A stretch of 64,000 nt of DNA from Octopus sinensis (GCF_006345805.1 NC_042999.1:88040001-88104000), one strand, 5' to 3'; shown: positions 10,448 to 64,000, numbered from the stretch's first letter. The notes: a model not told the origin generated them from the sequence alone. Translations and numbers: made by a program.

Positions 10448-11731
10448 CGAGGGGCGTTCAATAAGTAATGCCTCTGACCCACTTCCCATAGCAGTAGAGC
10501 AACGAAACTTGGCACAGGTATTAGTCTTTTTCTACATAGGAACAACCCAGAGGTACGCATTTCTCCCATCGTTTGATGCAGTTCTGGAGACCGTTTTCGT
10601 AGAAGACCCCAGCTTGGTCCTCCAACCACGACGTGACTTCAGAAATCAAGGCTGCATCATCTGGGAAACGCTTTCCTTTCAAAAACAACTTCATGGCTGG
10701 GAAGAGGTGAAAATCAGAGGGTGCAAGGTCAGGAGAGTAGGGGGATGGGGGAATAGTTCATAGCCGCATGCCTATGCTTCTGATCTGGCGACACGCGAGT
10801 TGTGGACCGGAGCGTTGTCCTGCAGGAGGAGGATGCCTTTGCTGATCTTGCCCCGCCTCTTGGTTTCGATAGCTTCTCTTAATTTCCTCAAAAGTGAAAC
10901 ATGATAGGCTCCTGTAATTGTGGTACCCTTTGCCAGGAAATCTGTCATCACTACTCCGTCCTGGTCCCAGAAGACTGTGAGCATGACCTTGCCAGCAGAG
11001 GGCTGCACCCTTGCCTTCTTTGGAGGAGGTGAGTCATGGTGCTTCCACTGCATTGACTGGGCTTTGGTCTCTGGATCATAGTGATGGACCCAGGTCTCAT
11101 CCTGTGTAATCAGTCTTTTGAAACATTTTGACTCATCTTCTTGGCACATCCCTAAATTCTCGCTTCTGGAATTCTTGCGTTCTTGCTTCTGGAAAAGTGT
11201 GAGCAACCTGGAAATCCATCTGGCAGACACCTTTTGCATATGCAAATGGTCATGAATGATAGTTTCCACAGACCCGGTACTAATCTTGACCTCATGGGCT
11301 ATTTGGCGAATAGTTATGCGTCGATCTTCCAAAATGGCAGCCTCAACTTGACGGACAGATGCCTCATCAATGGCAGAAGGGGTGCGACCAGATCTGGGAG
11401 CTGTTTCCACAGAGTTCCAACCATGTTTGAATTCATGATGCCAGCGTTTTACAAGGTCATATGATGGGGCATCATCACCATAAGTTACTTTCATTTCATT
11501 AAAAGTCTCCTGTGGTGTGCGTCATTTCAAATACAAAAACCGGATCACTGTTCGACACTCAACAGGCTCCATTTCCCACCTGACTCATTTCAAACACCTG
11601 TAAATCAGAAACCACAATTAGTTCGGAGCTGTAATTCACCACTTAATCTATAGTGATATCAATAATTGCACATTCAGCTAGATCAAACAAAGGCAAGTGG
11701 GTCAGAGGCATTACTTATTGAACGCCCCTCG
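10448..11731 (-). mobile_element. Full-length mariner (DD34D) transposon, 1284 bp, perfect 37-bp TIRs, TA target duplication
   Basis: TIR cgaggggcgttcaataagtaatgcctctgacccactt at 10448-10484 and its exact reverse complement at 11695-11731; TA at 10446-10447 and 11732-11733. Confidence 0.97.
10521..11572 (-). pseudogene. Mariner transposase pseudogene (~350 codons; two nonsense codons, one 1-bp deletion)
   Basis: MEPVECRTVIRFLYLK*...TQDETW...QDNAPVH...*...HPP(fs)YSPDLAPSDFHLFP...SYVEKD*. There are 34 residues between the 2nd and 3rd Asp after repairing the frameshift in a C5 run. Confidence 0.95.
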
Positions 11732-24249: not shown

Positions 24250-25290
24250 GTGTGTTCAGCTGAATAAAATTACTGCTGTTATTTGTCAACAACAACTTCT
24301 GGCGGTATATATTTCCATGACATGAAAGAAGTTTATGGTGACGATGCACCATCATATGACGTAATCATGTACAGGCATCGCCAGTTCATATGTGCTCGGA
24401 CACCGGTGGAAACTGATCCTATTCCTGGACAACCACATTCCGCCATTTATGACGATACCATCCATAAAGTGCGAGCCGACATTTTGGAGGATCGCCGCAT
24501 AACTATTCGGCAACTAGCCCAATAAGTTAAATAAGTGTAGCGTCTGTGGAAAAAATCATTCACGACCATTTGCACATACGGAAGTTGTCTGTACGATGGA
24601 TTTCTCAGATGTTCACACCTTTTCAGAACCAGGATCAAGTCAATTGCTCCCAAACTCATTTGGCAATGTGCCAAGAAAACGAGGAGGACTTTTTCGATAA
24701 AATTATCACACAGAATGGAACATGGGTCCATCACTATGATCTTGAGATTAAAGTCCCGTTGAAGCAATGAAAGCATGCTAGCTCACCATCTCCAAAGAAG
24801 GCTCGTGTCCAACCTTCATCACACAAGGTAATGCTAATCGTCCTTTGGGAGCAGCTCGGAGTAGTGATGATGGATTTTCTGGCAAAGTGTACCACAATTA
24901 ACAGGGCATATTATACTTCTTTGCTACAGAAATTATGGGACTGCATCAAAGCAAGAACGCATGGCATGCTGACCAATGTCATCCGCCTCCTCCAAAACAA
25001 CGCCCCAGTTCACAATGCACATGTTAACAAGATGAAAGCATACTCCTGGGGTTATGAAATCCTTACTCAATGCCCCCACTCTCCCACCTCGCATTATCTG
25101 ACTTCTACCTCTTTCCAACCAAGAAGTCATTTTTTGAAGGAAAAGCACTTTCTATATGATGAACTTATTTCTGAGGTAATGTCTTGGCTCTAGACGCAAT
25201 CTACCGACTTCTACAGATGAGCCCTTCACAGCTGCATAAAGCAATGAGAGAGGTGTGTGATTATTTGGTGGCTATGTAGAGGACTAATAA
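24250..25290 (+). pseudogene. Heavily decayed mariner transposase, same subfamily as 10521-11572
   Basis: DMKEVYGDDAPSYD...ILEDRRITIRQ...IIHDHLH...WVHHYD...PKKARVQPS...LLQNNAPVHN; many stops and frameshifts; TIRs not recognised. Confidence 0.9.
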
Positions 25291-31384: not shown

Positions 31385-32680
31385 GTGTGTATATATACAT
31401 TATGTGTGTTTAACTCCACAAACTCGTAAATTCAATTCAGCATGGCTTCGCTGTGGCAGGGAGTGTCTAACACAGCTCTTACATCACATTGAGGATATAC
31501 TTAAAGCCTTGGGAACAGGTTCGTACTCAGGTTCGACAGGGTTGACCATGAAAACTTCTACACTGGATTGAGTATTTCCTGTCGAATAGAACACAATATG
31601 TTGTGGGCGATGGAGTCTACTCAAGCCCAGCAAAAGCCACCAGTCGTGCCCCTCAGGGGACTGTCTTGGGTCCAATCTTCTTTATAATCTACACAAATGA
31701 CCTTTCCAGCATCGTAAATTACTGCAAATTGAAAATATTTGCTGATGAGACAAAGCTTCAACAGATCATCAATGAAGAAGAAGTCCGAACTCAAATCCAG
31801 TCTGATCTCTATGCGGTGAGTCAATGAGCAGACAAAAACAAAATGCAACTAAAGAAGGGAAAATTTGAGCTGATGCATTTTGGAAGAAAGACTATACTAA
31901 AACAGCCATACTCTCTTCCTTCAGTGGAACTGCTCACAGCATCTAATAATATCAGAGACCTAGGAGTAATTGTTGGTAACAATCTCAGTTGGAGTGCCCA
32001 CATCAACAATAAAGTCGATATAGCTCGTATGATGAGCTCCTGGATCTTAAGACCCTTCCGGTCCAGAGAACTAGGTGTCATCATTCCACTTTTGTCCTCC
32101 TTTGTACGGCCACACCTCGAATACTGCTGCCCCATGTGGTCTCCCAATACAAAGCAAAATATCTCGAAAATTGAATCACCCCAGAGGGCACTCACTAAAC
32201 GAATTAAGGGCATGACCGATCTCAATTACTGGGACCACCTTAAAGCCTTGAAACTCTACTCTCTCCAGCGCCGTCGCGAGCGGTACATCATTTGCACGAT
32301 GGGGAGAATATACCGCCAGCATTGCCCAAACGACCTGAACCTTAATTTCAAGGTTCATCCAAAGCTGGGACCTTAGGACATACGTCCCTTGCGCAATTCA
32401 AGATGGATCACAACATATAGGTACACTACGACACAATTTCTTTTTCTCAACGAGTTCTTCCCTGTTTAGCATTGTCCCAAAACTGATCAAAAAGGAAAAG
32501 GATCCCATCACCTTTAAACGGAGTCTGGACACATTTCTTCAAGGAATACCAGGTAAGCCACCTATACCTGGATATAACTCACTACTAAAACTTGACTTAA
32601 AAAGGATTTAGATAATCATATCAGGTGGTGTTATTAAGTTAGACATGGCCTGGACCAATCTTTGGTCGAAGCATATCTAA
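31385..32680 (+). mobile_element. CR1/L2-group LINE, 5'-truncated RT-thumb-3'UTR
   Basis: CLTQLLHHIEDIL...APQGTVLGPIFFIIYTNDL...KIFADETKL...FVRPHLEYCCPMWSP...LKLYSLQRRRER. Confidence 0.92.
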
Positions 32681-34614: not shown

Positions 34615-34652
<38 letters not shown>

Positions 34653-35370
34653 CGCGTCGACATTGTATGACACTTATAGGTCTCACTTGTGGGTAACCAT
34701 TGGTTCTGTGAGCCAATAACGGCATTGGCACATGTCACATCCTTCGATAGAGATTCTAGTCAGTCTTGTTTACCTTTTGATGTATCATTATCAGTAATAT
34801 TTCATTGTGTATATGTAAGCATTTTCAGATGTTCCGCTAATATTTGAAGAAAATTTGATAGCAATTTTTTTCTTGGCGAGTGACCTAGTCGAATCATTGT
34901 CCTTAGTTTACCAATATAGATATTCTGGTAAGATAGTAGTTGTTGCTGCATAGTCTCAGGTCAGCCATTTCAAGCTAACATATAACTAAAAGCAGCCAAA
35001 ACTGATCACCCAGTCTACGTTTCTAGAACTACATTGCTCTGTGTAAACCTAAAGCCTAACTATAAAGTGTGGTCTTCGGAAACATAAGCAGATGGAATGA
35101 TTATCTAAATCGTCTGTCGTTGACTTTGGGTAAAATTATATTATAGGGACTAACATGATGAGAAAACAATTACTTAAGGGGAGAATTAATGCGGAAATCT
35201 TAGTATGGACTAGTAAAAGAAAAAATAACATTTTGCAGCATTAAAGATCATTAAATTCAAGAGCTTCTAAATAAACAGCTTCTAAATTTAAATGCTTCTA
35301 AATACATGAAGTAGTAACATACTTTGCTGATCATATCTAAGAAACTTATACAAAAATAATGGCAGATGTA

Positions 35371-35467
35371 GGACAAATGGTAGCTGAATGAATTGGAAAG
35401 GCTTGTCAAGAACATGAAATGCACAATATTCAAGTCGAAGTAAGGAGGTCTAGGGTCCGGTTGCGAA
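35371..35467 (+). pseudogene. rpsK: Bacterial ribosomal protein S11 fragment
   Basis: GQMVAE*IGKACQEHEMHNIQVEV(fs)GLGSGCE resembles S11 AQMxAExAxKAxxEHGxxxxxVxVKGPGxGRE. Confidence 0.7.
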
Positions 35468-35497
35468 TTGGAATAGATTAGGTCATGTTATGATAAA

Positions 35498-35602
35498 ACG
35501 CATGAAATTGTTCGAGAAAATATTACAATATCAGTTATGTATTCAGGTAGCATTAAAGGAACAGGAACAAGCTGTCCTAGTTTTGAAGATTAAATTCCTT
35601 TT
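35498..35602 (+). pseudogene. mnmG: Bacterial MnmG/GidA tRNA-modification enzyme fragment
   Basis: THEIVRENITISVMYSGSIKGTGTSCPSFED*IPF matches the conserved THExIxxNLxxSPMYSGxIxGxGPRYCPSIEDKxxRF motif. Confidence 0.8.
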
Positions 35603-35620
35603 GAATAAGTAGAGAATAAG

Positions 35621-35656
35621 ATAATTGGAACTTTAAAATATATTTCTCCTGAAATT
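35621..35656 (+). pseudogene. Ser/Thr protein kinase subdomain VIII-like shard (PrkC/PknB-type?)
   Basis: IIGTLKYISPEI fits GTxxYx[AS]PE, but is only 12 codons. Confidence 0.4.
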
Positions 35657-35807
35657 ACTCACAAGTTCTTTCATCTCACCCTGGTTTTGTGCATCTACAT
35701 TTTCAACTGATATTTGCCTTGCAAAATTACTCCATTTATATCGGATTTGATAATTTACCGCGTGCTTATAAATGTAATGGTATATAAAAAGGAGTAATGT
35801 TTATTGC

Positions 35808-36199
35808 CGTTACTACCATTTTAACTCCAGGAGGATGCCTCCAGATGGTTATTCAATGCAGTCTGCACCCTGTATATATTGCATGCAGGTAGCAAACCAC
35901 TACCACTTCCAGTGTTGGAACCATCAGACCGTACGGTTTCAAGCTATTTCTACTTATCCTCAGTGGTGGATACTCGTCCGCTAAAGATAGCAATAGTTCA
36001 TTCCAGCTCACAATATATAGAAAAATAAGAATCCACAACTGAAGATGAACACAAATAGCTCGAAACCGTACGGTTTGGTGGTCCTGTTGCTGGAAAATGG
36101 TAGGGATTCGCTTCTCTGTATGCAATATATCCAGGGTGGAAACTGCATCGAATAACCAGCTGGAGGAGGCATCCTCTTGGGGTTAAAATGGTATTAACG
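35808..36199. mobile_element. Foldback MITE-like element (~390 bp, ~170-bp imperfect arms)
   Basis: cgttactaccattttaactccaggaggatgcc...gtacggtttcaagctattt vs the reverse complement of the right half cgttaataccattttaaccccaagaggatgcc...gtacggtttcgagctattt. TSD ambiguous (TA or TTAA/TTAC). Confidence 0.75.
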
Positions 36200-36635
36200 C
36201 TACTTATGGAGCAGTCATGTTGAAGTGGTGATAAACATTACTTCTCAGTACAGTTACTGCTTTCATCTCTTATAGAGGTTTTCTAACTATCTAATTCGCT
36301 CATTGGTAAATAAAAACATCGATATACTAGAAAACTTAGCATTAATGCTGCTGCTGCTTTTGATTTTGAACGATCATATCCTATGTAATAAAAAATTGAA
36401 GCACATGCTTGAATCAGCAGAATTTTCGTATAATAACTTATTCATGCGCTTCTTCAATTTGTTCACTTGAAGATAACGCTAAAAAAAATGCACCCTTTAT
36501 GATCTAGCATGAAATGCTACCAAAAACTAAAAATTTGTATGAATATCAGTTCACGATTTGTTAATGAATTAGATATTCGGGCTGTATCACATTCTGATGC
36601 TGCAGCATATTTTCACCGAAATTAAGCGGAAACAG

Positions 36636-36777
36636 TTATTCTGGCACTGTTAAATAAGTTAATAAACGAATAACAATTGATACCTTTAAGGTAAAATAAA
36701 TTCTTTTGACAATATGTTTTGAATATATCGACACTTGTTGTTTTTTTAAGATTTTCTCTTTTTACCTTCTGCATTCA
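36636..36777 (-). pseudogene. secY: Bacterial SecY N-terminal fragment
   Basis: KHIVKRIYFTLKVSIVIRLLTYLTVPE* matches SecY TM1 (KxxxxRIxFTLxxLIxxRxxxxIxVP); lies immediately after the rplO stop as in the spc operon. Confidence 0.75.
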
Positions 36778-36780
36778 CTA

Positions 36781-36940
36781 TTACACAACCTCTACTTTTC
36801 CAGCTGCTGTTGCAGTTGCTTCTTTTGCAGAGTTTGAAATATTATAAATTTTTCATATTTAAACTCTCAGTCATTTTACGACTATCTCAAATTTTGAGAA
36901 AAGTTTTATCAAAATGTATTATTTGTATGTTTCTAATGTC
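36781..36940 (-). pseudogene. rplO: Bacterial ribosomal protein L15, C-terminal half
   Basis: ...ISNSAKEATATAAGKVEVV* matches the L15 end (xSxxAKEAIExAGGKVEVI). Confidence 0.85.
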
Positions 36941-37313
36941 TGCAAAAGCTACTGATGTACCTGATGTTATTAAGAAACCAATCAAAGGGGCTAAAAATTC
37001 ATTAGTAAGAGTACCACTTGTAGGAACACCAGCTGCTTATGAAATAATGGGATGTTTTGGAGCAGGTCAGGAATGATTATATCATTTATAAAGGGCCTGG
37101 AGTTATTACTGAAGGATGTGTTCGTGCTGTAACTGAACACGCTGGATTAGCAGATGTTTATGCAACATCATTAGGCTCAATTATACCAATTGATATGATT
37201 AGGGCTACAAAAGAAGAATTGAAATCATAAAGTATAGTTGACCAAGTTGCTAGATGAAGTCGTAAAGCAACTGAAGAATTATAAGAATAGTAGAAGTATG
37301 GGAGAATGAACTA
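36940..37313 (+). pseudogene. rpsE: Inverted duplicate of the 3' part of the rpsE pseudogene, inserted into rplO
   Basis: 374 bp, reverse complement of 37579-37952 with 3 mismatches. Confidence 0.93.
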
Positions 37314-37578
37314 TTATGATTAATATATTAAATATTTCATTTTTTAAATCTTTCAAATTAAAGATTGTATAGCATTTTGTATTAATGTGTGTAAATCCCT
37401 CTTTTGGAATTTCTTGGAAAATGGAAGTTTACCCCCCCCCCTTCAAATCAAGGGCGTACTCCTCCACCGGTACGAACATTTTGATCTTTCTTCACTTTAC
37501 CTGAAGTTTTTCCTCGTCCTAATCTGTTGCAGGAATGACGAGAACCTTCTGTATATTTTAAATCATTCTCTTATATTC
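37314..37578 (-). pseudogene. rplO: Bacterial ribosomal protein L15, N-terminal half
   Basis: [43 protein letters not shown](fs, G10 run)*TSIFQEIPKEGFTHINTKCYTIFNLKDL. Confidence 0.92.
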
Positions 37579-37607
37579 TAGTTCATTCTCCCATACTTCT
37601 ACTATTC

Positions 37608-38229
37608 TTATAATTCTTCAGTTGCTTTACGACTTCATCTAGCAATTTGGTCAACTATACTTTATGATTTCAATTCTTCTTTTGTAGCCCTAATCATATT
37701 AATTGGTATAATTGAGCCTAATGATGTTGCATAAACATCTGCTAATCCAGCGTGTTCAGTTACAGCACGAACACATCCTTCAGTAATAACTCCAGGCCCT
37801 TTATAAATGATATAATCATTCCTGACCTGCTCCAAAACATCCCATTATTTCATAAGCAGCTGGTGTTCCTTCAAGTGGTACTCTTACTAATGAATTTTTA
37901 GCCCCTTTGATTGGTTTCTTAATAACATCAGGTACATCAGTAGCTTTTGCAGTTACTAATCCAACACGTGCATTTTTATCACCAATGATTACGACTGCGG
38001 CAAATCTGAAATGACATTCATATTTTGTCACTCTTGTTATGCAATTGTTACAATTGTTTCAGAAAACTCATTACCAGCTTGATTGCAATTAAATGAAATT
38101 TGTTCAGTTAATGATGTTGTTTTAGGTTCATCTTGGTTATTATTGTTCTCTTTTTTCTTTTTTGCTTGCTCTTGAACAGTCGATATCAAATATACAATTT
38201 TTTTTCTGTCACATGTTTCTATTATTCAT
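37608..38229 (-). pseudogene. rpsE: Bacterial ribosomal protein S5 with a long N-terminal extension
   Basis: NEFSETIVTI(fs)RVTKYECHFRFAAVVIIGDKNARVGLVTAKATDVPDVIKK...VRVPLEGT...EIMGCFGAG(fs)[39 protein letters not shown]...EEL*. Confidence 0.95.
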
Positions 38230-38234
38230 TCTGA

Positions 38235-38520
38235 TTATAATTTTATACCATCTTCACGAGCTGATTCAAAAATGAATACTTGTTCATGATAAAACTAACC
38301 ACTGCAATCAAATACAATATTATGAATTTCGTTTAAGTTGAGCATTTTCAGCAATATCTGCGCCAGTGCTTCTTTAACAGCAGCAATAATTGAAGTTGAG
38401 TTTGATCTATTAATTGTGAATAACAATGAACACTTAATTTGTTCACATTTAATCTTGGGAGTAGTAAAGTACCTGCAATTTTATTTTAAAGACAGTAGCG
38501 TCTTTTGTTTTACAGTTAAT
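38235..38520 (-). pseudogene. rplR: Bacterial ribosomal protein L18
   Basis: KRRYCL*NKIAGTLLLPRLNVNKLSVHCYSQLID...IHNIVFDCSG*FYHEQV...ESAREDGIKL* matches L18 (SGTxxRPRLNV...YAQIID...VVFDRGGYxYHG...AARExGLKF). Confidence 0.88.
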
Positions 38521-38774
38521 AGAACATAAAGAATAATAATGTAAAAAATAGACATGGCTTAAGATATATAGAATCGAAGAACAAAATACCAGTTATAATG
38601 TGTGGGAATTATAAGTCTCTAAAGAAAATTATTTTTTTATAAATATTACGGTTTTAATTTTGAAAGGTAATTACTTTATATTTAATTTGTTAAGCTTTTA
38701 TAGAATACAACACAAGTGTTCCTGACTTATTTGCATCTTTCTTTCTCTTTCTCCCTCTCTCTCTTACATATATT

Positions 38775-39112
<338 letters not shown>

Positions 39113-43625: not shown

Positions 43626-44918
43626 GTGGGCAGGCTAAAAAGTTCATAGGCTGACTATGATGGTGTGTCGCTAGAGTTGTGAAATCTTGCATGCATTCAT
43701 TTTAATTCTTATTATTATTAACTGCATTGCTTCGTTCCAGATAAACATATACCAAACTGTTTAAAGAAGACTTTAAATGTAACTAGTAGCAACATGTGTT
43801 GAAAATGGACAATATTTGGCACCGTGGTGTTATCCAGTACCTGCAGAAAAAAGATATAGCCCCCAATGACATTCATGTTCACATAGTTGATATATTAGAG
43901 GATGATGTTTCAGCTTTATCAACAATGCAAAAGTGGGAGCTGAATTTGGGAGGGTAAGGGGAAGTTTTAAAGACGATCCAATGTCTGGACATTCTGCAAC
44001 TGACACCATTGCGGAAAACATTGATTGTGTTCACCACAAGCTGATGGATGACAGGCGAGTGACTATAAATCAAATAGCCAATGCTGCTAACATGCCTTAT
44101 GTGAGAATTACGAATATTCAGCGAGATGAGCTTTGCCTGACAAAGGTTTCTACTCAGTGGGTGCCACGTCTTCTGACTCCTGATAAAAAGTGCATTAAGC
44201 TAATCAAATCACGGAAAAATCTGACATTGTTTGAGGCAGATTCTGCTAGTTTACATGGATGTTTCCAAATCCAGGATGATTGTAGGCTGCATCACTTTGA
44301 ACCAACGACAAAGAGGCAATTCATGCGGTGAAAACACTCCACCTTAGTTGCTCCAAAGAAGGCTATGATCGTTTCATTTCATCTATAGGGAAGGCGATGG
44401 CCACTCATTCTCGAGATGCAAAAGGCACCGAGTTTATTGACTACTTCAAAAGGGCCACACCTTCAATGGAAAGGGAGTACTATTCCAACTTGCTGAGGTA
44501 GTTACGAACGTTTATCAAAACCAAACACCCAGGAAAACCGACAGGAGGGTCTTTTTTTAAGAAGACAATATTCTAATGCACAAACCATTGGTTCCAATGG
44601 CCGCTGTGCGTTTTATGGCTTTAAAATGATTGATAACATTCCTTATTCTTCTGATTTGACCTCTTCTGGCTATCATCTGTTACCTAAACTGAAACAAAAA
44701 AAAGCAACACTTGGCTGGGAAGCAGTATCTCAGTGATAATGACGTCATATCTGCTGTTGGTGACTTATCAGACTAACAGGATGAAAGCCCGTCGCCAATG
44801 GGATCCAAGCAAAGCAACAACAATGGAAGGTATGTGTGCACCGCAAGAGAAATATTCTTCACTTGGTCACATTCCATAAGTATCTTAGTCAGCCTATGAA
44901 CTTTTCAGCCGTCCCTCG
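43626..44918 (+). mobile_element. Decayed mariner of a second subfamily with imperfect TIRs
   Basis: Left ta-gtgggcaggctaaaaagttcataggctgacta vs right (rc) tacgagggacggctgaaaagttcataggctgacta. Transposase remnants MDDRRVTINQIA...WVPRLLTP and a PYSSDL-like motif. Confidence 0.88.
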
Positions 44919-46429: not shown

Positions 46430-46790
46430 TCTTATTCTTTTACTTGTTTCAGACATTTGACTGTAGCCATGCTGGAGCACCGCATTCAGTCGTACAAATG
46501 AACCACGAGCTTACTCTTTGTAAGTCTAGTATATTCCACTTGTCACTTTTGCCGAACCACTAAGTTATGGGGACGTAAACGCAAACACCCACACAAATAT
46601 ACAAACATACATATATATATATATATATACATACATACGACGGGCTTCTTTCAGTTTCTATCTATTAAATCCACTCACAATGCGTTGATTATCCCAAGGC
46701 TATATTAGAAGACACTTGCCCAAGGTGCCACGCAGAGGGACTGAACCCAGAACCATGTGCTTCTTAACACACAGCCACGCCTGCACCTGT
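46430..46790 (-). mobile_element. Family A SINE, degenerate
   Basis: Reverse complement of the consensus (gccgaacc...ggggacgtaaac...aagacacttgcccaaggtgccacgcag). Confidence 0.85.
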
Positions 46791-50100: not shown

Positions 50101-53045
50101 CATTCAGTAGTTTTATTTTTATAGCGTGCTTTCACTTCACTACCGAGCGCAGCTCTATGTGCCTTAGGTATGTGCTCTGATTTGTTGTGATGCTCTGATG
50201 GTTATTGCATGGAAAGTGTTCTGCGTAGGATGTGTGCAGTGCCTAGTAGTGCAATTTTCTGTATGTTATATGTGTTTGTAAGTCCTGATATTTTTGTTAT
50301 GTATTTGTCTGAATACTTTTTTATCATGCCTAATGCACCTACTATGAGAGGAATTGTTTCTATTTTTAGATTCCACATTCTGGTTACCTCTATTTCTAGG
50401 TCTTTGTATTTTGAAAGTTTCTCCATTTCTTTTAGAGTCACGTTGTCATCTGCCGGTATTGATACATCAATTAGAAAGCATTTTTTTTCTTCATGATCTC
50501 TGACAACTATATCTGGTCTGTTGGCCTTAATTTCTCTATCTGTGTGTATCGGCATATCCCAGAGTATGGTTGCTTTCTCGTTTTCTGTAACCTTTTCTGG
50601 TGTGTGCCTATACCATCTTTTTTCTGTTTTTATTCCATAATGTTGGCATAGCTTCCAGTGTATGTAGGTTCCAACTCTGTCATGTCTGTGAATATATTCC
50701 TTCTTAGCCAGGACTGGGCAGCCAGAGATAATATGATTTATTGTTTCTTGTCCATCTCCACATATTCTGCAGTTACTTGTTATATTTCTTTTCATTACAT
50801 GTCTTTGGTAATTTCTGGTGGGGAGGCTTTGGTCTTGTGCTGCAATTAAAAATCCCTCTGTCTCTGCTTTGAGTCCTGAGCTTCTCAACTATTGCTGGGA
50901 TTTTTCTTTGTCTATTTCTTTTGCGTTTAGTTTAGTCCAGTATTTACCATGAAGGGGCTTTTCTTGCCATCGTTTTATCATTGTTCGTTGCTGTTCTGTT
51001 TTTAGTTTGGATTTCATTTGTTTTATAGCTTTTGTTGTTTCTTCATCTTCTTCTTCTTCTTCATATTTATTAGGTGGTATGATTTCTTGCTTGTATTTGT
51101 CAGCTTCCTTAAATACTGAGAACAGTTTTTTGTTTTGCTCGTGTTTTGCCGCTATTTGTATCAGTTTTCCTTCCTTCTGAAGTAGATATTTTTGCAGTCC
51201 TATGGTGGATATTTTATAGTAGTTTTCGAGTTGTATAAGGCCTCTACCACTTTCTATACGTTGTATATATAGTCTTTCTATGTCAGATTTTGGGTGATGC
51301 ATCCTAGATCCTGTCAGTATTTTTCTTGTTTTCCAATCTATTTTGGTCAGTTCATTTCGTGTCCAGTTAAGGATATTGTAGCTGTAACTTATAACTGGGA
51401 CAGCTAAAGTGTTAATACCTATTATCTTGTTTTTAGCATTGAGCTCTGTTTTTAGTATTGATCTAACTCGTCTATAATATTCTTTTTTTATTTTCTTTTT
51501 CATTTGTGTGTGTTGTGTGTTATCTAGTTCATGGATTCCTAAGTATTTGTAAGTTTGGCTTTGGTCTAATTATTTTATTTCATTGGTTTTATCTAGTGTG
51601 ATGTTGCTACTCTTAACTAGTTTTCCTCTTTTCAGGGTTACTTTGGCGCATTTTTCTAATCCAAATTTCATATCTATTTCTTTGGTAAATCCATGAACTG
51701 TCTTTAATAGTGTTTCCAGCTGTTTGTAATTTGCAGAGTATAGTTTTAGGTCATCCATATATAAAAGGTGGCTGATCGTTTTGCCGTAACATTTATATCC
51801 GCATCCAGTTCTATTTAACATATCAGATAGAGGTGACAGTGCCAAGCAGAAAAGGAGTAGAGAGAGAGTGTCTCCCTGGAATATTCCTCTTCTAATGGGG
51901 TTGGCTTTGGTTTTCATGAGTCCCTCTTTTGTTTGGAGCTGTAGCACGGTTTGCCATTTATTCATAGAGTGCCTTATGAATGTTATAAGTGTTGGTGCTA
52001 CTTTGTTAATGGTTAGTGTTTCGAGGATCCATGTGTGGGGGATGCTATCAAACGCCTTTTTTGTAATCGATCCAGGCCATACTGAGACCTTTCTTATTTC
52101 TGTGGCTGTCTTCCGTTATGGCTTTATTAATCATTAGTTGATCTTTACAGCCATATGAGCCTTTGCGGCATCCTTTCTGCTCTTCTGGAAACAGGTTGTT
52201 TTCGTCCAGGTGCTTGTTCAACCTTTGCGTTATCACTGCAGTAAATGCCTTGTATATTGTAGGGAGACATGTTATTGGTCTGTAGTTTTCTGGTTTTGCT
52301 GTCTCATTTGATTTGGGAATTAAGATGGTTTTCCCCTTCGTGAGTCATTCAGGCATTGTCTCTGGCTCTGCTAGCATGCTGTTAAAGTTTTCAGCCAGCT
52401 TTTTGTGCATTACTGTTAGATATTTCAACCAGAAGTTGGGGATCTTGTCATGCCCAGGTGCCTTCCAGTTGCTTAGTCTTTGCAGTGCCTGGATGACCTC
52501 TTCAGTTGTTTTGGGGGTCCAAAGTTGCTCAGATGCTGAGTTTGTTGTTTTCATACTTCTTTTTTTTGTTTGTTCGTTCGCCGACCATATTTATCTCCAG
52601 AATTCTTCCACTTCTTCTGCCGTTGGTGTTGCAATGACTTCTATTTTATTTTTGCCAAGTTCTTGGTAGAACTTTTTGGGGTTGCAGTTGAACTTTTTGT
52701 TTTGTTCAAAGAAGCGCTGGCGTTTCTCGTACCGGCGGATCCTTTGTGCTTTGGCAAGGATATCTTGCTTCAGCTTTTCTTTTATCTCAGGTATATTTTT
52801 TTCTGTGATGTTATATTTGCGGAGTATTTTTGTTTTCTTTTTGTTGCTCAGTAGCGTTGATTGTCTACTGATTTCATCAAGAATCGACAGACCTTTTCTC
52901 ATTTTTTGTATTTTGTTTTGGATGTTATTTATCCACAGGGTTTGTTTGGGTGGTGGTACTCCTGTTTGGATGGGTTTGAGTGAGTATCTTTTGTGGCTGC
53001 AGTGGCTGCTGCGTATACTAAGTCATTTAGCTTAGTGATATCGCT
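50101..53045 (-). mobile_element. Dong/R4-clade LINE, 5'-truncated (~2.9 kb), RT + CCHC + RLE, inserted in (TAA)n
   Basis: NWKAPGHDKI, NYRPITCLP, WIDYKK, RGIFQGD, HLLYMDDLKLY (RT); CRICGDGQETINHIISGC (CCHC); RPDIVV...IDVSIP...KLSKYKDL (RLE). (ATT)n on both sides (50027-50100, 53046-53316); several stops and frameshifts. Confidence 0.96.
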
Positions 53046-53066
53046 TATTATTATTATTATTATTAA

Positions 53067-53108
<42 letters not shown>

Positions 53109-53125
53109 CATTATTATTATAGTTA

Positions 53126-53157
<32 letters not shown>

Positions 53158-53212
53158 GTTATCATTATTATTATTATCATTATTATTATCGTTATCATTA
53201 TTATTATTGTTA

Positions 53213-53271
<59 letters not shown>

Positions 53272-53275
53272 GTTA

Positions 53276-53316
<41 letters not shown>
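53046..53316. repeat. (ATT)n/(ATC) microsatellite
   Basis: Direct reading. Confidence 0.98.
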
Positions 53317-53700
53317 GAGCTAGCAGAATCATTAGCTGCCGGGCTAAATGCTAAGCAACATTTAGCCCATGTATACGTGCTGGGTTCAAATTTCGCCGAG
53401 GACGACTTTGCATATCATACTTTCGGAGACAATAAAATGAGTACCAGTTGAGTACCATTCGACGAAATCGAATTAACCTCCACTCTGGAATTGCTGGCCT
53501 TGTGCCACTATTGGAAACCATTATTATTATTATTATTAAGACTGTGACATTTCAGAATCTTTAGTGCGTCAGACAATATTCTTAATGGCATTTCTTCCGG
53601 CTATTTACAATCACAATTCAACGGCGTCGACTTTACCTTTCATACTTTCGAGTTCGATAAATTAAAGTACCAGTCAAATACAAGGATCAATCTAAACAAC
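53317..53700 (+). mobile_element. Two tandem degenerate family B SINEs separated by a short (ATT)n
   Basis: gagctagcagaatc...gggttcaaatttcgccgagg; second copy with gtcgactttacctttcatactttcgagttcgataaattaaagtaccag. Confidence 0.7.
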
Positions 53701-63206: not shown

Positions 63207-63410
63207 ACATTTGTGTGTCTGTGTTTTTCCCCCAACATTGCTTGACAACTGATGCTGGTGTGTTTACTTCCCCGTCACTTAGCGGTTCGGCAAGAGAGAC
63301 CAATAGAATAAGTACTAGGCTTACAAAGAATAATCCCTGGAGTCGATTTGCTCGACTAAAGGCGGTGCTCCAGCATGTCCGCAGTCAAATGACTGAAACA
63401 AATAAAAGAG
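62974..63410 (+). mobile_element. Family A SINE, full length, with internal (TA)n
   Basis: ggtgcaggagtggctgtgtggtaag...ttagcggttcggcaagagagacc...ggcggtgctccagcatgtccgcagtcaaatgactgaaaca. Confidence 0.92.
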
Positions 63411-63859: not shown

Positions 63860-64000
63860 TGCCTTTTACTTGTTTCAGTCATTTGACTGCGGCCATGCTG
63901 GAGCACCGCCTTTAGTCGAGCAAATCGACCCCGGGACTTATTCTTTGTAAGCCCAGTACTTATTTTATCGGTCTCTTTTGCCGAACCGCTAGGTGACGGG
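63860..64000 (-). mobile_element. Family A SINE 3' part, continuing off the window
   Basis: tttcagtcatttgactgcggccatgctggagcaccgcctttagtcgagcaaatcgacccc...ttttgccgaaccgc. Confidence 0.92.

Follow-up and report, generated by a model that had tools for sequence, protein, structure and literature searches.

Between positions 35371 and 38548, the 64-kb stretch of DNA analyzed here (referred to as the window) contains an island of bacterial gene remnants. With a probability of roughly 0.85, we regard this island as the fossil of Mollicute DNA that once integrated into the inherited nuclear genome of an animal, most likely an octopod, and decayed neutrally. Remnants of six genes were recognized, with rpsK and mnmG on the plus strand and secY, rplO, rpsE, and rplR on the minus strand. 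None of them can be read intact, each carrying one to five frameshifts and one to four stops in frameshift-aware protein-to-DNA alignment. Judged by its sequence, the island is bacterial-derived, thoroughly pseudogenized, and without detectable present function. An earlier note on this DNA had proposed an old integration from a bacterium, analogous to nuclear Wolbachia transfers (nuwts); the decay, the animal-repeat context, and a diverged second copy of the island all support that view. The coordinates of the features are collected in Table 1.

Table 1. Features of the bacterial island and its immediate flanks, in window coordinates
Feature	Position	Strand	Remarks
(GT)n microsatellite	34617-34650		Nearest recognizable host feature on the left
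rpsK (S11) remnant	35371-35485	+	Amino acids ~64-102; one in-frame TGA, one frameshift; abuts mnmG
mnmG (gidA) remnant	35486-35610	+	Amino acids ~245-290; ...GxGPRYCPSIEDK motif region; ends in stop
AT-rich spacer	35611-35807		No family or operon-gene match
Palindromic element, 392 bp	35808-36199		Arms 35808-35974 and 36028-36199, ~80% complementary; center 53 nt
secY remnant	36205-36835	-	N terminus (amino acids ~8-99) recognizable at 36835-36594
rplO (L15) C-terminal part	36784-36939	-	Amino acids ~97-151; end ...AGKVEVV, then stops; tblastn, alignment
Inverted duplicate of rpsE 3' two-thirds and rpsE-rplO spacer	36940-37313	+	Complementary to 37579-37952
rplO (L15) N-terminal part	37314-37575	-	Amino acids ~8-98; TIGR01071 E = 1.4e-8; tblastn E = 1e-13
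rpsE (S5) remnant	37608-38189	-	Long Lys/Asn/Gln-rich N-terminal extension; Pfam, protein match, alignment
rplR (L18) remnant	38238-38548	-	Two stops, one frameshift, internal deletions
SINE-like repeat, then (TA)n	38780-39110		Right host flank; repeat at ~38780-38930, (TA)n at 38931-39110

Gene remnants and their arrangement

The remnants were searched for by tblastn, with the proteins of 27 bacterial loci fetched around their S5 genes as queries, and by a Pfam scan of all six frames of window positions 34700 to 38900, which returned both S5 domains, L18 in two pieces, and, weakly, GIDA. For S5, Pfam domains Ribosomal_S5 (E = 1.4e-10) and S5_C (E = 2e-9) were matched, and tblastn gave E values of 1e-29 to 1e-31 across the 27 loci at 38046-37611 on the minus strand, with a second S5 piece at 36933-37281 on the plus strand. 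L18 was matched by TIGR00060 (E = 1.7e-5) and by tblastn at 38506-38238 on the minus strand (E ~1e-8). The two parts of L15 were located at 37567-37310 and 36958-36784, both on the minus strand, and once the inverted insert between them is taken out, the alignment covers reference amino acids 10 to 151. SecY matched at 36749-36594 on the minus strand with E values of 4e-5 to 1e-3 in a 4.3-kb search space. Past amino acid ~99 of SecY the frameshift-aware score was not significant; the segment from 36594 to 36205 is homologous to the second copy by blastn, with decay too deep for a SecY alignment. The mnmG piece was recognized by TIGR00136 over ~45 codons (E = 1.2e-7) and by MnmG chains in the PDB, among them 2zxh (E = 9e-6) and 3ces, with E values up to 2e-5, the match to Pfam GIDA being weak. 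The S11 match was likewise weak (NCBIfam NF003698, E = 0.022), with a frameshift-aware score of 51 versus a shuffle maximum of 33 to 38; in tblastn, more than 20 species matched the same 25 to 33 codons (amino acids ~64-88 at 35371-35445 on the plus strand).

Lesions were counted in frameshift-aware alignments against Mesoplasma grammopterae proteins. S5 contains at least two frameshifts, one TGA, one TAA, and a three-codon deletion, whereas L15 contains five frameshifts, three in-frame TGAs, and one TAA or TAG. In L18, both stops are TAA or TAG and no in-frame TGA was counted; the same holds for the first 60 codons of SecY, with one such stop and one frameshift. All six remnants claimed in the earlier note were thereby found near where it had placed them, S11 weakly, by Pfam, tblastn, NCBIfam, and PDB matches, and the stops and frameshifts that it ascribed to each were borne out. 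Its span of 35150 to 38520 stood from 35371 rightward, whereas S11 codons upstream of 35371 were undetectable.

Read along the minus strand, the order rplR-rpsE-rplO-secY' is that of the spc operon, as the earlier note had recognized, with no rpmD between rpsE and rplO. The rpsK and mnmG pieces lie in the opposite orientation to this block and are not adjacent to each other in the compared loci; therefore, the island is a mosaic, built from at least three pieces of donor DNA. S11 amino acid ~102 continues without a gap, and in the same frame, into MnmG amino acid ~245. Because rpsK and mnmG are not syntenic, this boundary is the junction of two separate donor fragments.

A tblastn screen of the whole 64-kb window with spc-, S10-, and alpha-operon proteins found no further gene of these operons outside the island. 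L6 (rplF), S8 (rpsH), S13 (rpsM), RpoA, Adk, Map, and InfA did not score above shuffled controls, and neither S13 nor the S11 N terminus was detectable to the left of 35371. Rfam and tRNA scans of the window returned nothing, and exact database look-ups of three island open reading frames (ORFs) and ten window ORFs found no record.

The flanks of the island are of animal type. Flanking by host microsatellites and short interspersed nuclear elements (SINEs) had been claimed before, and on the assembled contig the (GT)n tract lies on the left and the SINE-like repeat followed by (TA)n on the right. The SINE-like repeat starts ~230 bp from the end of rplR and has five more copies in the window. 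The island shares its contig with mariner and long interspersed nuclear element (LINE) ORFs and with numerous microsatellites, and SINE copies and microsatellites lie within 250 to 700 bp of the remnants. A 30-mer that we take to belong to an abundant Octopus SINE is matched perfectly at 63878-63907, and its copy at 63364-63393 has one mismatch; a further copy at 46452-46481 completes a set of three with zero to three mismatches.

A diverged second copy of the island

A 1582-bp Logan contig (L029, run SRR11869390) carries a diverged copy of the island. It was found through a 58-amino-acid ORF (P0049), the single unusual match of the HMMER search with the S5 N-domain described below, which shares derived residues with the window (LVTA.AT, PIKGAK, and GCF). 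Aligned in one piece with window positions 38153 to 36205, with the inverted insert removed, it shows 75.6% nucleotide identity (266 mismatches and 128 gap positions in 1613 columns), and the homology is limited at both ends by microsatellites. Several lesions are common to the two copies: the deletion of KYECHF with a nearby frameshift in S5, a TGA where the GFEGG motif of L15 has its invariant Gly, and a frameshift near DLE.LN. Like the window, L029 has no rpmD. These shared lesions imply that the sequence was already dead when the copies separated. Differences between them are spread evenly over the three codon positions (0.23, 0.22, and 0.245), which indicates that both copies drifted neutrally since the split. 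Single changes comprise 29 synonymous and 80 nonsynonymous ones, and the divergence accumulated by both copies together amounts to ~0.2 substitutions per site.

The diverged copy with the shared lesions was encountered in SRR11869390 and one further sample. A profile search built from both copies for more pseudogene copies returned only P0049 again, and 20-mer scans of JGI metagenomes gave chance seed matches only. Two other candidates for additional copies, P0308 and P0309, turned out to be ordinary bacterial S5 proteins. Exact look-up of three window-copy ORFs in the collection that holds L029 found none of them, which hints weakly that L029 comes from another species.

Two copies could also have arisen if the bacterial DNA had arrived indirectly, with a host mobile element as its carrier or with such an element or a segmental duplication multiplying it; they would then be paralogues in one genome. 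An identity of 75.6%, the palindromes inside the island, and the transposon-rich window fit such a history. We consider it unlikely nonetheless, since no bracketing terminal inverted or direct repeats were found around the island, Pfam detected no transposase or integrase inside it, and the absence of window-copy ORFs from the collection holding L029 speaks, if weakly, against paralogy.

A recent inverted duplication within rplO

The window copy contains a 374-nt inverted duplicate that the earlier note did not mention. It splits rplO at ~codon 98, such that its two arms, 36940-37313 and 37579-37952, enclose a 265-nt loop made of the L15 N-terminal part. The arms are 99% complementary, with three mismatches. 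The insertion point is exact, between ...CATAA and (G)ACATTA of rplO, with no target bases lost and a junction homology of 0 to 1 nt; L029, from which the insert is absent, reads ...CATAA-G-ACATTA... straight across the site. As the arms differ at 3 of 374 sites, compared with ~0.2 per site between the copies, the fold-back event is ~25 times younger than the copy split. An inverted copy of a neighboring sequence, a single-copy loop between the arms, and junction homology of 0 to 1 nt are also features of fold-back duplications of the type attributed to microhomology-mediated break-induced replication (MMBIR) or fork stalling and template switching (FoSTeS); the difference is that here the mechanism is deduced from structure. 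If transcribed, the rpsE inverted repeat is predicted to form long double-stranded RNA.

Identity of the donor

Gene order is the clearest discriminator of the donor. The distance between the rpsE stop and the rplO start is ~34 nt in the window. It is 7 to 23 nt in 10 of 10 Mollicutes loci, whereas all 17 Bacilli and Clostridia loci have rpmD in between and a distance of 222 to 243 nt. Within Mollicutes, ribosomal protein L30 is reported only in the Acholeplasma/phytoplasma subgroup; its absence is not exclusive to Mollicutes, and many other bacteria lack it as well (Grosjean et al., PMC4014445).

Protein comparisons point in the same direction. The best protein match to the stitched S5 was that of Mesoplasma corruscae (55% identity, E = 3e-35), alongside a Mesoplasma-like Logan protein. 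Mesoplasma S5 scored 139 bits, compared with 123, 85, and ~72 bits for the solved structures from Bacillus subtilis, Mycoplasma pneumoniae, and Escherichia coli, respectively. The S5 N-terminal extension of ~50 codons aligns to that of Mesoplasma (ENNNNQDEPK versus ENANNQTQPER), and the motifs HFRFAAVV, VGLGTGKA, and ADVYAKSLG are common to both proteins. Ranked by identity, with a match in either copy counted, the top eight taxa were all Mollicutes of the Spiroplasma-Entomoplasmatales-Mycoides (SEM) clade (0.56 to 0.61). A phylogeny of the stitched fragments had been proposed in the earlier note; in a neighbor-joining tree of S5, L15, and L18 (376 columns), the window and L029 fell inside the Mollicutes with 95.5% bootstrap support and were sister to the Spiroplasma endosymbiont of a barnacle with 81%, these values coming from motif-picked taxa without the Hominis group or a typical Pneumoniae group and from long branches of decayed sequence. 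No close living donor was found, as no match above 58% identity to the S5 N-domain was present among 1.84 billion protein representatives searched with HMMER, the best ones ranging from 44 to 58%.

Five in-frame TGAs were recorded, including those at 37437, 37070, and 35389. Three of them align to Leu, one to Gly, and one to Ala, and the recognizable parts hold no conserved Trp positions. The Leu-aligned TGAs fit mutation from TTA to TGA rather than Trp coding. Two other Logan contigs, L001 (SRR33317154) and L030 (SRR6224382), carry Mesoplasma-like L6-L18-S5 clusters, presumably from live Mollicutes; the genes of L001 are intact, and S5 of L030 was called as two fragments, probably owing to sequencing errors. 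The two runs contrast usefully with the decayed copies.

A real insertion could also have come from another donor, either an rpmD-less member of the Bacillota other than a Mollicute, for instance, an unsampled symbiont resembling Erysipelotrichia or Bacilli, or an unsampled, deeply branching line of Mollicutes that does not belong to the SEM clade. The S5 N-domain is 50 to 55% identical to that of many Firmicutes, the identity margin over Pseudogracilibacillus is just a few percent, and both the occurrence of L30-less bacteria elsewhere and the lack of any sign of UGA read as Trp would be compatible with such a donor. Against it stand the operon spacing, which fits every Mollicutes locus and none of the 17 others, the bootstrap support for Mollicutes, and the S5 extension and motifs shared with Mesoplasma. 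We regard either alternative donor as distinctly unlikely.

Proposed history of the island

The account that we favor, a fossil of Mollicute DNA in the nuclear genome of an animal, would comprise five steps. First, DNA of a bacterium from the SEM clade or a nearby Mollicute, residing in or next to germ cells, would have been captured at a chromosome break. Second, at least three non-adjacent pieces (the rplR-rpsE-rplO-secY' block, mnmG, and rpsK) would have been end-joined in mixed orientation. Third, the genes would have been dead at once and never made into protein, and stops, frameshifts, and deletions would have accrued. Fourth, the broken sequence would have split, by speciation or duplication, into the lineages of the window and of L029. 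Fifth, much later and in the window lineage only, a break in rplO would have been mended when 374 nt of the adjacent rpsE were copied in by fold-back repair. The sequences themselves show the bacterial and Mollicutes-like origin, the operon order, the pseudogenization, the second copy with its shared lesions, the neutral divergence, and the exact insertion of the inverted duplicate; the germline route, the end-joining mechanism, the identity of the host, and the timing are what we infer here, the first two being modeled on nuclear mitochondrial DNA (NUMTs) and on nuwts. Mycoplasma has been reported as dominant in the microbiota of cephalopod reproductive tissue (review, PMC12383823), which makes access to the germline plausible.

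Several points weigh against this account. L029 may be an orthologue from another species or a paralogue, and both fit. The continuity with host repeats is that of an assembled contig, and the call that the host looks like an octopod comes indirectly, from the Octopus SINE 30-mer that matches the window, the sole pointer to the host lineage. With regard to the donor, the best Bacilli identity is close behind that of the leading Mollicutes, at most 0.556, no in-frame TGA aligns to Trp, so that there is no sign that the donor read UGA as Trp, and the tree has the taxon choice and long branches described above. Finally, the 392-bp palindrome is unconfirmed as a miniature inverted-repeat transposable element (MITE) and is not counted as proof of residence in a host genome.

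Mollicutes are common in cephalopod tissues, and genuine Mesoplasma-like S5 genes occur in the unrelated public runs of L001 and L030, such that Mollicute reads from the sampled tissue might have been stitched into a host contig. Such contamination or chimerism is very unlikely, because all six genes are broken, including those for essential ribosomal proteins and SecY, the fragments are scrambled, and an independently assembled, microsatellite-bounded second copy has the same lesions. In addition, the nearest real protein is only ~55% identical, and the inverted-repeat arms differ at three sites, which argues against an assembly fold-back artifact. It is hardly credible that the locus has been co-opted, its 374-nt inverted repeat and 265-nt loop being transcribed as a long hairpin RNA and processed into small RNAs, since a recent origin suffices to explain the 99% complementarity of the arms, whether young or possibly homogenized, the other copy lacks the duplication, which is hence unconserved, and Rfam found nothing in the window. 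An organelle origin was rejected, as animal mitochondria do not encode rplO or mnmG and the operon has a bacterial structure.

The favored account could be extended by supposing that much of a Mollicute genome was integrated long ago and that the island is one part of it, with many fragments and cross-species orthologous fossils in octopods. We regard this extension as doubtful. If it is true, cephalopods once had a Mollicute symbiont, now lost, that lived in association with the germline and was passed on vertically, and the fossils would allow it to be dated. Adding to it the transcription of the rpsE hairpin into small RNAs would be still more speculative.

Relation to known transfers and operons

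Dead insertions of Wolbachia DNA are well known from the nuclear genomes of arthropods and nematodes, for example, as nuwts in Glossina morsitans (PMC3998919) and Drosophila ananassae (PMC4558871) and as the filarial "ghosts of symbionts past" (PMC12693587). The island resembles nuwts in being fragmented, rearranged, pseudogenized, and flanked by host repeats, and nuwts, too, can outlive the symbiont. It differs from them in that the donor would be a Mollicute instead of an alphaproteobacterium and the host apparently a cephalopod instead of an arthropod or nematode; moreover, it spans only ~3 kb, has no known living donor, and is heritable by inference. A literature search turned up neither a Mollicute as the donor nor a cephalopod as the recipient of such a transfer, in line with the earlier note, which knew of no case in cephalopods.

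Mosaics of NUMTs and of nuclear plastid DNA (NUPTs), which form when end joining captures organelle DNA at double-strand breaks, likewise consist of short, non-adjacent pieces of either orientation that meet head to tail at sharp boundaries, comparable to that between S11 and MnmG, and they share neutral decay and later local duplication. The donor here is a free-standing bacterium, and rplO and mnmG are not carried by animal mitochondria. Compared with the spc operon of Mollicutes outside the Acholeplasma/phytoplasma (AAP) subgroup, represented here mostly by SEM-clade loci, the island has the same rplR-rpsE-rplO-secY order, rpsE abutting rplO, and the long S5 N-terminal extension (PMC4014445). 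Unlike in the living operon, the genes are dead, an insert divides rplO, secY breaks off after no more than ~230 codons, and no trace of rplF, rpsH, adk, map, infA, or rpsM was detected.

The island would add a case with a Mollicute donor to these dead insertions. If confirmed in reads and in relatives, it would mean that the germline of octopods was at one time within reach of a Mycoplasma- or Spiroplasma-like bacterium, and it would provide a marker for dating that association. Decontamination pipelines could wrongly remove or flag such loci as Mycoplasma contamination. As the island has no apparent function, its interest lies in history and methodology rather than in mechanism.

Other features of the island and the window

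The earlier note had described the island as interrupted by a host-type MITE, a claim that remains unproven for the 392-bp palindrome. The 64-kb window contains no second copy of it, no clear target-site duplication is visible around it, and its ORF has no Pfam match. Just outside both arms lies an 18-nt inverted match (35789-35808 and 36227-36246), which is also present in L029 at 1503-1522 (E = 0.007). This match suggests that the palindrome is perhaps a fold-back duplication that included island sequence, not a transposon; inverted homology beyond the 18-mer was not significant. A host MITE and an older fold-back duplication, comparable to that of rpsE, are both candidate explanations of the palindrome.

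The AT-rich spacer between mnmG and the palindrome may be further decayed donor DNA. On the left, the sequence from 34651 to 35370, between the (GT)n tract and rpsK, is either host DNA or donor DNA beyond recognition; no Pfam family was matched in 34700-35370.

Elsewhere in the window, mariner/Mos1-type transposase ORFs (Pfam Transposase_1) are located at 10772-11494 on the minus strand and at 24831-25193 and 43933-44331 on the plus strand. The mariner ORF shows 88% identity to Logan proteins and 84% to a protein from a mantis shrimp; a cardinalfish protein belongs to the same 90% cluster. With identities of 62 to 88% to mantis shrimp, fish, and Octopus, the family has apparently spread horizontally among marine animals, and it is uninformative as to the host. 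A 152-amino-acid, near-all-Ile "ORF" at 52993-53451 on the plus strand is an artifact of an (ATT/ATA)n-type simple repeat and not a gene. LINE-type reverse transcriptase ORFs at 50202-51965 (minus strand) and 31843-32376 (plus strand), recognized by RVT_1 (E = 9e-12) and zf-RVT (E = 2e-5), are ordinary host remains.

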